From Salpingoeca rosetta (lineage: Eukaryota; Protista; Choanoflagellata), in NCBI GenBank assembly GCA_033442325.1, contig JAWQFM010000017.1, positions 1,043,125-1,107,124 of the forward strand: a DNA stretch of 64,000 nucleotides, in the 5' to 3' direction. The position numbers and the translations under genes are program-made. The notes under the pieces are model-generated. The model was not told the DNA's origin. It ran no database searches and was given only the letters and a program-made list of their open reading frames with translations. This document shows positions 7,742-14,424 of the stretch, piece after piece. The stretch's first letter is position 1. Every line of letters begins with the position of its first letter.

Positions 7742-10700
7742 ATGAACACGGACATGGAAACCAACGGCAGAGCGGCATCCATGTCTTGGGGTAAGTCGAG
7801 GGTGTGCGCGGTGTGTGCGTGTATACTCTGTGTGTGTGTGTGTGCGTGTATACTCTGTCTGTGTGTGTGCGTGTGTGCGTGTGTGCGTGTGTGCCTGAAC
7901 ACTTCGTGTGCGCGAATACTTTGTGTGCGTGTGGTACAGTCACAGCAACAACACAACAACAACACAACAACGATGACAGTCGTCTCACTACAATTCCATC
8001 ACCACACCCCCTCCCCCACCAAACACGCAACACATCACCCGTGCCACACGCCACAGTGTGCATCCAGACGGATGCAAAGCAGACGATGATCGGGCGCTGC
8101 GGGGACGACGAGCCCAGCGTCAACATCCCCACAGTGCACCCCGGTGGCGCCGCGTGCATTGATCGCGGCAGCGTCAAAGACTGGGACGGCCTGCGGTCGC
8201 TGTGGAAGCGCGGCCTGGGCCACATTGGCGTGACCATCCAGAACCCACACGCCGTCGTCACCATGCCGCAGGTCTTCAGCACGCGAAAGAACGTGACCAC
8301 GCTGGTGAGCCTGCTCTTCCAGCAGCTGAAGGTGCCGGCCATCTTCCTCACCAACCCTTGGATTGCCGCCCTCATGAGCAACGGCGCAGTGACGGGCGTG
8401 GTCGTGCATGTGGACGACGCTGCTGCCTGCATCGCCCCCGTTGTGCGTATGCGCGTGCTGGAGGATGGCCTCTTTCGTCTTCCCTTTGGCAGCCGCGACC
8501 TCAAAAACCCACAAGTCCTGCAAGTCCTCATCAAGGTAATGCTGTCAGGTGCGGGAGTGAGTGTTGTGTTGTGTTGTGTTGTGTTGTGTTGTGTTGTGTT
8601 CTGTGCATGTGTTAGTGCGTGTACTGTGCTTGTGTGAGTGTTATGTGTGACAACATTTGGCTGTACAAGCTCATTGCATGTACTCTTGGCCCCTTGTTCG
8701 TGCTGCTGTGAAATCACCAGACGGTCTTCCAGTCCATCATCAAGTGCAACAAAGACGTCCATCGCATTCTCGCCAAACGCGTCATCCTCAGTGGCGCATG
8801 CCCAGGTTGGTGACACAGAGACGGTGTGTGTGTGTGTTTGTGTGTGTGTGTGTGTCTTGTATGTTTGTGTGTTTGTGCGTGTCTTTGTGTCTTTGTGTGT
8901 GTGTGTGTGTGTTCCTGCTTACGCACAACGTTCACTTACATCGCGTTCACGCGCATCACTGTTCATACTTGTATCTTGTGCTGCCGCAGAAAACTTTGAT
9001 GCCATCTTGGAGGCCCACCTGACGGCCAGTCTGCAACACCACAACAACGACGCGGTGAGCATGGCGGCGCTGCTATCGTCTGTGCACCTGCTGGTTTCTT
9101 TTCACTCAAAGCACACCACAAACTGTTCTGGTGTGAGCGGGAACGCATGAACACACACACACACACACACACACACACACACACACGCACACACACACAC
9201 ACACACACACACACACACACACACACACACACACACACACACACACACACACACACACACACACACACGTGACCTCACATTCGCGCTTGCGTCATGGATA
9301 GGATGACGAGTATGAAGTGCATGTTGAGTCGACGGCAACGGAAGGAAAGCTCAGCACGTGGATTGGTCTCTCTATCATCGGCTCTCTCTCCACAGCCGTC
9401 CACGAGAAGCCAGTCATCGAGGTGCGACTTCGGCGTAGATGTGCGTGTGTGTGTGTGTGCGTGTGAAAATGCGGGTGTTCATGTCTGCTGCGTGTCACTT
9501 TCTCAGCACTTGGCTCGTGTGTGCTCAAACCGACATATCCACTTGATCGTTCCAAATGCAACACCACATCCCCGCTTCCGTCGCTTCTCCTCACCCCTGC
9601 TTCCATCCTCACCCTTGCTTCACCACCACCACCATCATCACCTCAAATCCCACAACCGCCTTCACCACCACAGGATGGCGCCATTGGCGCGTACATGACC
9701 ATTGACCAGTACAAGCGCTTTGGCCCAGACTACATCTTCGCGCAGGAGCACAAGGCGGCGTCCGTGCTCGCCCCTGTTGGCCAGGGTGTGGGCACAATCG
9801 TCAGCGATGCAGAGATTGCCCGCCCGCCGAGCGACCCGCTCTGGGACGGCCCAGACCAGTTTGGTGAGGAGGGGAGGAGCCTATGGTGGTGGTGGTGAAG
9901 GTGGTGGCGGTAGTGGTGATGGCGGCGGCGGTGGTGGTGGTGGGATGTGAGGGAAGGTTGTGGAGCAGAGAGGTCGTGCTTGCTGGCGCAGGCGTGCAAC
10001 ATGCGCTTGCTTGCGCACATGTGGGATGTGCGGCGACTGAAATGCGCCTGCCTTTATCCAGGCACCTTTGTGTTTGTTCTCACCTGCAACTGTGCGTGTT
10101 TGCCTGTCCCCACTCTCTCCACGTGCTCAGTGTGCCTGTACACGGATGAGCGACGAATTCTCGGTGGGCGCTGTGGCAACGACGAACCATGCGTGAGTAC
10201 ACAGCAATGCGTGTTGTTTTCGACGCACGTGCTCTTGATCGCATCGCACGCACACATTGCTGGTTGCGGCTTCTGTGTCTTCTCATGGCCTACACACACA
10301 CTCTCACCTACACACACACACACATACACACATACACACATACACACACATACACACATACACAAACACAAACACTCACCCACATGTCCGCGTGCGGCTG
10401 CAGGTTGCCATTCCGACAGGAGAGCTGGCGCGTGGCGATGAGCCGTTCTTTGAGGCCGGCACCATCGTCGACTGGAAACACGTCTCCACAAAGTGGCAGA
10501 AGGTGCGCAGTGATGGTGATGGTGATGGTGATGGTGGCGGTTGCGATGGTGGTGGTGGCGTGTGCATGTGTCTTCGCTTGCGGTGTCATCGCGGATCGAA
10601 CTTCAGCCTCCATCGGCAATCCCATCACCACACACCACACACCACGCACCACGCACCACACACCACTCATAACAACCCTCTCCCTTGTCAATCCAACCAA

Positions 10701-13700: not shown

Positions 13701-14424
13701 GTGTCACGGACAGTTCTGTGTGCTGTGAAATTGTGGGGTTGTATTGTGAGCGTGGTGACAGGCAGTGTTATGCGTATTGTTTTGAGTGTCTGCGTGCGTC
13801 TACGTGCACCGCAACGCTTCTTGCATCAACCTCTGCTGAAGCTTATCCCTCTCCTAATTGCTCTTCCTCCTCCTCCTCCTCCTCCTCCTCCCCACCACCA
13901 CCACCAACACCACCACCTGTGCCATGTCATTTCTCCTTCTGCACTAACAGGAGCAGGCCCAGAGCGCAGCGCAGCGGTCTGGATCGCAGGTCCGCTTGTC
14001 CGATTCCGATCTTGCGTCACGCACATCGCGCGGGCGGCCGAGTCTCCACGCGTCGTCATCCTCCTCCGACCGCCGCTCGCACTCCCGCGACAACCACCAA
14101 CGGCAGCAGCAGCAGCAGCAGCACCAGAGGGAGCGCGGCGAGTATGATGAGCGCAGCCGCAGCCGCGATGGTCATCGTCGTGCCGAGAGCAGTGGACGTT
14201 CGCCAGTGCCGCGCCCGGAGTCAACAGAGACAGGGCAGCAGCTGTACGGTGGATATGGCGGGTATGCGGGCGCACGTGGGCGGAGGTCGCTTGAGCCAGG
14301 TGCACCGGCATCAGACAACAAGGTCGTGCGGCCTGTGCGACATGGCGGGAAGGGCGGGTCAGTTGATCTGCAACGCCGCAAGCTCTCGGATAAGGCCGCC
14401 TTCATCAAGAGCAGCATGGTGTGA
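7742..14424 (+). CDS. Tandem actin-fold (two divergent, internally deleted actin-like domains) plus PH domain plus Arg/Ser-rich tail, ~916 aa
   Basis: 16 phase-compatible GT-AG exons: 7742-7790, 8057-8535, 8721-8805, 8990-9054, 9302-9421, 9674-9863, 10131-10192, 10404-10502, 10768-11091, 11324-11443, 11617-11775, 12088-12248, 12481-12535, 13133-13270, 13525-13695, 13951-14424. Actin-like motifs occur twice: GRCGDDEP/GRCGNDEP (actin GFAGDDAP), IDRGSVKDWD/FEAGTIVDWK (IEHGIVTNWD), ALMSNGAVTGVV/ALMASGCESGVV (SLYASGRTTGIV), FQSIIKC..ILSG/HSSITHC..IIVSGG (FNSIMKC..VLSGG), STWIGLSIIGSL/SFWVGVSIIGAL (SVWIGGSILASL), TIDQYKRFGP/SREQFDKYGS (SKQEYDESGP). PH domain: VHQGWLTKQGG..KNWKRRWFIL..RTYYIYA..EETAIWLRKL. 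Confidence 0.88.
12709..12808. other. Assembly gap (100 N)
   Basis: Run of N following a CA repeat. Confidence 0.99.
12809..12933 (-). other. Orphan ankyrin-repeat exon, antisense inside an intron of the actin-PH gene and abutting the gap
   Basis: A ttgacag acceptor is followed by VLRLLLRAAPTAVMLSDPEGRTAVHWSCKHESTHSLHILLK, which fits the ankyrin consensus D..G.T.LH.A....(h)..LL. No other exons of this gene are visible in the window. Confidence 0.7.

Follow-up and report, generated by a model that had tools for sequence, protein, structure and literature searches.

PTSG_06637 of Salpingoeca rosetta encodes two reduced actin-derived units in tandem with a PH domain and belongs to a family conserved across choanoflagellates

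Does the choanoflagellate Salpingoeca rosetta make a protein in which two reduced actin folds and a PH domain share one polypeptide chain, and if so, what might such a protein do? The question is raised by the gene PTSG_06637, which lies in a 64,000-nucleotide stretch of contig JAWQFM010000017.1 (hereafter, the window; all positions refer to it unless stated otherwise). A prediction made from the letters of this stretch (hereafter, the original prediction) had proposed a spliced open reading frame (ORF) of about 916 residues in 16 exons, joined across an assembly gap, that encodes two reduced actin units, a PH domain whose beta1-beta2 motif is basic, and an Arg/Ser-rich tail. The reading frame as proposed is correct. 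Namely, when the 16 exons are joined at their borders (window 7742-14424, forward strand), they give an open coding sequence of 2751 nucleotides and 916 residues, all introns being GT..AG and all exons being bordered by AG..GT, and the product is identical in 916 of 916 residues to P0153, the NCBI entry "hypothetical protein PTSG_06637 [Salpingoeca rosetta]". For this reason the stitched ORF is the existing gene model, which UniRef labels "PH domain-containing protein" and for which the Pfam Actin and PH matches are already on record. The predicted phases hold as well: exon 13 ends in ..NLEVHQ and exon 14 starts with GWLTKQGG, both in phase 0.

The join between these two exons deserves particular care, since a run of 100 Ns (12709-12808) lies within intron 13, between CA-rich microsatellites at approximately 12590-12708 and 12974-13075, and this flanking probably explains why the assembly broke here. 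Long (CA)n or (GT)n microsatellites occur in nearly all introns of the gene (7790-13530), for example at approximately 9150-9270 and at 12974-13075. With exons 13 and 14 separated by this gap and by two long CA repeats, one can ask whether the actin units on one side and the PH domain with the tail on the other are separate genes that annotation or assembly has misjoined. RNA reads mapped to positions 13076-14450 speak to this directly, the junction 12535/13133 being seen from the side of exon 14 through loose 5' ends. In two raw RNA-seq runs (X21 and X22, three reads each) and in two RNA contigs (X4, 2116 nucleotides, and X5, 4045 nucleotides), matching starts at 13130, and the unmatched 5' letters are the last bases of exon 13, with the CAG fitting both sides; in other words, the junction has the support of four RNA runs from three studies. 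Moreover, RNA depth is 0 at 13076-13121, within intron 13, and in the next two introns, and among the RNA mapped to this region no cluster of transcript starts is seen before exon 14. The junction NLEVHQ/GWLTKQGG is therefore read directly from RNA, and in the dominant RNA exon 13 is spliced straight to exon 14, with no exon hidden in the gap. The contigs extend at least 255 letters upstream of exon 14, the longer one being long enough for the whole coding sequence, and runs X4-X9 hold a fraction of 0.35-0.40 of the words sampled from 7742-12700, where the exon fraction is 0.397. Further downstream, the joint 13695/13951 appears in RNA as GT..AG and the joint 13270/13525 as two contiguous contig pieces, offset by 9 similar bases with one mismatch. 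Finally, the same fusion is found in six other lineages, as complete ORFs or on one contig, always with ..HQGWL.KQGGG... Both the RNA junction and these fusions speak against separate genes, and we reject the two-gene artefact for the dominant transcript, considering it extremely improbable. PTSG_06637 is one real, expressed gene with one transcript, and the link across the gap, for which an RNA check had been suggested, is confirmed.

How widespread is this architecture? A full HMMER scan with exon 2 as the query gave four proteins with E below 1e-30, with two matched stretches in each. The order unit 1, unit 2, PH domain, tail recurs in complete ORFs from the transcriptomes of Microstomoeca roanoka (868 residues), Salpingoeca infusionum (1143), Choanoeca perplexa (855), Choanoeca flexa (869) and Salpingoeca kvevrii (810), all full-length members having ..HQGWL[TVM]KQGGG.. 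at the site of the S. rosetta gap. To these can be added an environmental contig of 4771 nucleotides (L023, Logan SRR23272326), in which the two units and the PH domain are collinear with those of PTSG_06637 at identities of 27-31% for the units and 55% for the PH domain, a second contig (L024) with two units in tandem, a 949-residue Logan product about 85% identical to PTSG_06637, a fragment from Codosiga hollandica and many exon-sized environmental fragments. Contig L023 is almost without introns, and a gene for a GH20 glycosidase adjoins on its other strand. Word-indexed protein searches with P0002, with a profile (A1) and with region 330-765 of PTSG_06637 reached no animal or other non-choanoflagellate relatives, returning the same choanoflagellate proteins each time. 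PTSG_06637 is thus a member of a family conserved across choanoflagellates, and the search of choanoflagellate transcriptomes that the original prediction had proposed yields the same architecture in five other species and one environmental contig.

What, then, are the two repeated units? Pfam detects actin even in single exons: exon 2 matches the Actin family (PF00022, cut-off 27 bits) at E 1.2e-15 and exon 9 at E 1.7e-7, both above the cut-off, and over the whole protein the match amounts to 151.9 bits in four stretches that cover both units. Foldseek searches against the PDB likewise give actins as the best matches (E 1e-18 to 1e-16, template modelling (TM) score by target 0.61-0.75, identity about 17%), and in the ESM Atlas a unit matches actin with a TM score of 0.76 over 260 residues. 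Atlas shape searches with both of our structure models found only single-unit actin matches. Actin is thus recovered by profile and by structure, as anticipated by the original prediction, which had named the lack of an actin-fold match as what would undo it. In the PDB alignments each unit follows actin from residue 72 to 190 and then jumps to 277-353. In particular, in an alignment of 12 units from six species with the S. rosetta actin itself (L001:1492-2619), the units lack approximately 29 residues at actin 38-66, that is, the DNase I-binding loop (D-loop) and most of subdomain 2, as well as approximately 80 residues at actin 191-270, that is, subdomain 4 with the hydrophobic plug, while they carry a 13-residue insert after actin 353 and a C-terminal extension of approximately 40 residues. 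The best-conserved stretches (GRCGDDEP, FLTNPW.AALM..G and W.G.SI.G.L) correspond to the cores of both retained subdomains (1 and 3) and to the cleft floor on the barbed face. Each unit is, in other words, derived from actin, keeping subdomains 1 and 3 and lacking subdomains 2 and 4, and does not possess the four subdomains, D-loop and subdomain 4 included, of a functional actin. Can the units be placed in a class of actin-related proteins (Arps)? A profile of 14 units searched against the PDB has conventional actins in all of its best 60 matches (E 1e-28 to 5e-25); with unit 2 alone, which has the same two deletions, Arp1 comes marginally first, at 42.0 bits versus 40.7 for actin. Because only conventional actins are found among those best 60 matches, no Arp class can be assigned, closeness to one of Arp1-Arp11 over actin not being what the profile returns, and we have rejected such an assignment.

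The units have also lost the residues by which actin holds its nucleotide. In the residue table, both phosphate loops (phosphate-1, DNGSG, and phosphate-2, DSGDG), the adenosine motif, Q137 and H161 are gone in 12 of 12 units from the six species, so that the nucleotide motifs of a functional actin or an Arp that binds adenosine triphosphate (ATP) are not found. The DNGSG loop has become Q/Y/H-T-D-x-K/R, with actin D11 replaced by Q, Y or H, G13 by D (G in unit 2 of Choanoeca) and G15 by K, R and others; in place of DSGDG, unit 1 has H-V-D-D-A and unit 2 has C-S-E-S-T, with D154 replaced across the family by H, C, A, V or Q, G156 by D or E (sometimes G) and G158 by A, Q, E or T. At Q137 the units have P, H, V or T, and at H161 they have C, S or V. 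Because both phosphate loops, Q137 and H161 are lost and subdomains 2 and 4 are absent, it is very unlikely, judging from these residues, that the units bind ATP or polymerise in the fashion of actin.

The two units, which are 32% identical to each other in S. rosetta, appear to be the products of one old duplication. Namely, a maximum-likelihood tree unites all units in one clade (support 100/100), within which the unit 1s and the unit 2s of the different species form separate clades (89/85 and 81/74, S. kvevrii included). Because they separate in this way across species, the tree places the duplication before the split of the choanoflagellates sampled here. As for the arrangement of the two units, an AlphaFold2 (AF2) model of residues 16-635 has a mean predicted local distance difference test (pLDDT) value of 84.5 and a predicted TM score (pTM) of 0.80, and a model of residues 1-765, called full-length here, has values of 77.7 and 0.46; for unit 1 the pLDDT in these models is 80-90. 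The pTM of the two-unit model implies a defined mutual arrangement, in which the units would be packed as a compact, fixed pair. In this respect, the "pseudo-actin dimer" of the original prediction is a composite claim: "pseudo-actin" stands on the loss of nucleotide-site residues in 12 units of six species, while the packed covalent pair comes from the model.

Between the units lies a 40-residue linker (residues 290-329) that is conserved like the cores, with 82, 57, 45, 50 and 30% identity to the orthologues, yet its pLDDT falls locally under 50 in the full-length model and is 56-72 in the two-unit model. This combination suggests that the linker may be a docking segment. One can then think of the pair as a clamp on a long helix or peptide, in the manner of actin-Arp4 or Arp7-Arp9 on HSA helices, relocated to the membrane, with the conserved linker or an external helix lying along both barbed faces. 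Such a clamp would agree with the predicted fixed pair of actin folds, with a linker whose pattern is typical of docking segments, and with the fact that its units, like several nuclear Arps, need not polymerise. We nevertheless hold a clamp of this kind to be quite unlikely, since the PH domain and the PDZ ligand described below point to the membrane and not to chromatin.

With subdomains 2 and 4 and the plug gone, and with the subdomain-3 contacts not conserved, filament contact would be possible solely via the remodelled barbed face. Here the cleft-lining helix is nearly actin-like (W-I-G-x-S-I-I-G-S-L-S-T, with I341, I345, L346 and L349 kept), and the cleft residues M143, G146 and M168 are invariant in the family, where actin has Y143 and G168; at Y169 of actin the units have K, R or Q. 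The stretches of subdomain 3 that make longitudinal contacts in actin are not actin-like and are variable. Would this suffice for a protein that caps or nucleates filaments? If so, it could act via its barbed faces only, and therefore at the pointed end, as a cap, an anchor or a seed for nucleation. The barbed face of each unit would receive the D-loop and subdomain 4 of an actin subunit, so that the pair would engage two subunits, one on each strand; having no subdomains 2 and 4 of its own, the pair would thereby block the pointed end at the membrane or act as its template. Such a mode of action would be reminiscent of Arp11/Arp10p on the Arp1 filament or of Arp2-Arp3 in nucleation. The part of actin that has been retained is indeed the barbed-face half only, the cleft-lining helix is close to that of actin, and two units would fit two strands. 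A protein-language-model search of the ESM Atlas ranked "Actin-related protein 10" first (score 0.92), which we take as a lead only, and there is a precedent in Arp11/Arp10p, which caps the Arp1 filament (PMC3459859). On the other hand, key residues that contact the D-loop differ from those of actin (M for Y143 and for G168, K, R or Q for Y169, V or E for T148, with M355 and F375 variable), the subdomain-3 contacts 283-294 and 322-326 are unlike actin and vary even within unit 1, the plug and the lateral contacts of subdomain 4 are deleted, and no Arp is present among the best 60 PDB profile matches. Because the altered residues argue against canonical contacts, we rate a pointed-end cap or seed as unlikely, and the same doubt applies to its fuller form, in which the pair of units, a new kind of actin mimic held on PI(3,4,5)P3 membrane by the PH domain and on a PDZ scaffold by the C-terminus, would engage the two terminal pointed-end subunits or template a filament, possibly with the linker as a D-loop-like plug. 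A complex prediction for residues 16-635 with S. rosetta actin gave a score of 0.00, which counts neither way.

The same cleft could serve proteins that bind its counterpart on actin. WH2 proteins, profilin, cofilin/gelsolin-type domains and RPEL motifs contact actin at cleft and W-loop residues, including Y143, T148, G168 and Y169. The units could be a decoy or dock for such binders, concentrating or sequestering them at a membrane rich in phosphatidylinositol 3,4,5-trisphosphate (PI(3,4,5)P3): the cleft-lining helix persists along with subdomains 1 and 3, cleft positions are invariant in the family, and membrane-targeting modules (the PH domain and a C-terminal S-x-V) are present. Still, the changes Y143M, G168M, Y169K/R and T148V/E fall on the very residues that these ligands use, and we regard this role as having only a slender chance of being the true one.

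The remainder of the protein is informative about where it may act. Pfam PH (PF00169, cut-off 25.1 bits) matches exons 14 and 15 and, over the whole protein, residues 654-759 with 70.4 bits. Among solved PH domains, 3tfm, the second PH domain (PH2) of myosin X, is the closest (E 1.3e-18), with the runner-up ten orders of magnitude weaker (3e-8), and by this comparison the domain is of the myosin X PH2 type. The signature of PI(3,4,5)P3 binding is defined as K-Xn-(K/R)-X-R, and myosin X PH2 confers PI(3,4,5)P3 specificity, with the double mutation K1237A/R1239A abolishing membrane binding (PMC3216653). The mutated K and R align with K675 and R677 of PTSG_06637, which, together with K661, are invariant in six species. 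Since the crystallised myosin X construct carries K1224N/K1225N (PMC3216653), the wild-type loop is nearer still to that of PTSG_06637. With the signature complete, the predicted ability of the domain to bind 3-phosphoinositides fits its sequence. S. rosetta also has a myosin X-like PH-PH-MyTH4 gene (L021:8255-9764 and L022, G000:C6:1370251-1373217), which shares GGG[TS]xxLxRKNWKRRW and is 61% identical over the first 36 PH residues. Conservation among orthologues is highest in the PH domain (50-93% identity) and lowest in the tail (4-38%).

The tail, with 27 S and 25 R in 156 residues and no Pfam match, is as basic and serine-rich as had been predicted, and together with the invariant K661, K675 and R677 this bears out the earlier description of the C-terminal part. 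Two short stretches in it recur. The motif VVRPVR aligns with VVRPVR, VPKPVQ, VVRPVH and KRPVR in four orthologues. The C-terminus reads S-M-V in five species (..KSSMV) and S-E-V in S. kvevrii (..RRSEV), the S at position -2 and the V at position 0 being invariant; three orthologues share all of the last 6 residues (100% identity), although their tails are otherwise 10-38% identical. A class I PDZ-binding motif has the form [S/T]-x-hydrophobic-COOH at the C-terminus, and the conserved S-x-V fits it as a candidate ligand.

Putting these elements together, we favour, with some confidence, the reading that PTSG_06637 is a lipid- and PDZ-anchored scaffold showing two actin-like faces, probably in filopodia or collar microvilli. 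In this scheme, two actin-derived domains would have been turned into non-catalytic interaction modules of a modular adaptor. They would bind no ATP, form no polymers of the filamentous-actin type and pack as a fixed pseudo-dimer; the PH domain would bring the protein to PI(3,4,5)P3-rich plasma membrane, the C-terminus would dock on a PDZ scaffold, and the pseudo-dimer would offer a partner a platform made of two remodelled actin "barbed faces", the latter being the subdomain 1/3 cleft. The likely setting would be actin-based protrusions, that is, filopodia and collar microvilli. A hint at such a setting, if a weak one, comes from the divergent neighbour of the gene, a large myosin gene that occupies window 1-4900 on the reverse strand and continues leftwards to G000:C17:1037383 (L020:1383-8669). 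It encodes a motor, IQ, MyTH4-RA/FERM, SH3 and a second MyTH4-FERM, a layout that we take to be that of class VII-type protrusion myosins, and it stands head-to-head with PTSG_06637, with the 5' ends at most a few kb apart.

That said, several points weigh against the scaffold reading. The loss of ATP binding, the lipid specificity and the PDZ binding are all read from the sequence. The invariant cleft (M143, G146, M168) could reflect folding constraints instead of a binding site. Furthermore, the other four structure models are less confident (pLDDT 77-52), the full-length model reaches just the low pTM given above, and gene neighbourhood is of little weight in eukaryotes.

How does this protein compare with known systems? 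With conventional actin the units share the fold, the cores of subdomains 1 and 3, GxxGDDxP, the hinge region and the W-x-G-x-S-I helix; unlike actin, they are without subdomains 2 and 4, the phosphate loops, Q137, H161 and the adenosine motif, and PTSG_06637 has two copies per chain with a PH domain, the 13-residue insert and the 40-residue extension, at approximately 17% identity. Arp11/ACTR10 and yeast Arp10p are also non-polymerising actin relatives, and their barbed face seats on a filament end (PMC3459859). However, no specific sequence kinship with them was found, the best PDB relative being actin, and Arp11 is a single unit within dynactin without a PH domain, whereas PTSG_06637 has two units and a PH domain. 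Yeast Arp10p is unusually short, at approximately 284 residues. Arp2-Arp3, actin-Arp4 and Arp7-Arp9 resemble PTSG_06637 in that two different actin folds act as one unit, but they are separate polypeptides with four subdomains, mostly with nucleotide sites, in large complexes, whereas the pair described here is covalent and predicted to be compact. With myosin X PH2, the PH domain shares the GGG-containing beta1-beta2 loop and the K-Xn-K-X-R signature, but it is a solitary domain, without a split PH1 around it, a PH3-MyTH4-FERM part after it or a motor.

Other combinations of actin and PH domains do exist. P0137, a 590-residue product of a Logan contig, shares the domain pair, but its PH domain (of the KQGGG type) is N-terminal and is followed by one complete four-subdomain actin. 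Two "hypothetical protein" clusters of the ESM Atlas, with representatives of 1022 and 1264 residues and 74 and 95 members, carry Pfam Actin in 100% of their members and PH in 61-76%, their commonest known phylum being Arthropoda. They share the domain pair with PTSG_06637 and may be animal relatives of its family; the comparison consists of one alignment, in which one of the clusters covers 356 residues across query 3-613 with a TM score of 0.40. Two EukProt maker models, P0024 (742 residues) and P0162 (752 residues), have two full-length actins in tandem and could be real fusions or merged neighbouring actin genes.

In the literature searched, we found no papers on PTSG_06637 or on an architecture of tandem actin units with a PH domain. 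The earlier statement that no such family had been described thus stands as far as this literature goes, but not for the databases and not for the gene as an isolated case: it is annotated, with its Pfam Actin and PH domains, in NCBI, UniProt and EukProt as hypothetical, and it is one of a conserved choanoflagellate family. It is a new form of actin-family protein, uncharacterised in the literature searched. Three points go beyond the original prediction: the kinship with myosin X PH2, the S-x-V conserved at the C-terminus and, as the neighbouring gene, a MyTH4-FERM myosin.

The coordinates of the gene and its features are collected in Table 1. Elsewhere in the window, an open frame of 746 residues on the forward strand (26759-28996) has a match to the Sec23-binding domain of Sec16 (E 6.9e-8). 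On another contig, three intronless actin-family genes, divergent paralogues included, lie within 15 kb (G000:C16:996834-1011596, L004-L006); L006 is 68% identical to the main S. rosetta actin, and the copy L005 has an altered loop, DNGS-F-E-C-K.

Table 1. PTSG_06637 and its features in the window.
Feature	Position	Strand	Basis
Whole coding span	7742-14424	+	open frame, AG..GT borders, product equal to the NCBI entry
Exon 1, start codon and 16 N-terminal residues, ends in phase 1	7742-7790	+	Microstomoeca orthologue begins alike, then ..SW/VCIQTD
Exons 2-6	8057-8535, 8721-8805, 8990-9054, 9302-9421, 9674-9863	+	
Product of exons 2-6: pseudo-actin unit 1 (residues 17-289) and inter-unit linker (290-329)	8057-9863	+	Pfam, actin alignment, AF2
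Exons 7-13	10131-10192, 10404-10502, 10768-11091, 11324-11443, 11617-11775, 12088-12248, 12481-12535	+	
Product of exons 7-13: pseudo-actin unit 2 (residues 330-606), C-terminal extension, first PH residues	10131-12535	+	Pfam, PDB alignment
Intron 13, with N run 12709-12808	12536-13132	+	sequence; skipped by RNA
Exons 14 (13133-13270) and 15 (13525-13695), PH domain, residues 653-760	13133-13695	+	Pfam PH
Phosphoinositide signature K-Xn-(K/R)-X-R: K661 (13145-13147), K675-R676-R677 (13187-13195)	13145-13195	+	
Exon 16, disordered S/R/G/Q-rich tail (residues 760-916) and stop codon	13951-14424	+	composition; no Pfam match
Tail motif VVRPVR, residues 884-889	14323-14340	+	orthologue alignment
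C-terminal S-M-V, candidate class I PDZ-binding motif, S914 and V916 invariant	14413-14421	+	orthologue alignment

What would such a protein mean for the biology of choanoflagellates? The actin relatives described so far are single four-subdomain folds. Choanoflagellates, the closest living relatives of animals, have a conserved lineage whose actin has lost all but the barbed-face half, has been doubled in tandem and deprived of its nucleotide site, and has acquired signals for targeting to membrane and scaffold. The cell type concerned, for which transfection and genome editing are available in S. rosetta, is a model for the origin of microvilli and filopodia. If the pair binds something other than filaments or actin-binding proteins, it would show an ancient ATPase fold becoming a pure scaffold. 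If it were a cap or nucleator after all, choanoflagellate filopodia or collar microvilli would gain a membrane-attached pointed-end anchor or nucleator without counterpart among the known Arps. And should filaments or actin-binding proteins be what the pair contacts, it would represent a new principle of actin regulation by molecular mimicry.

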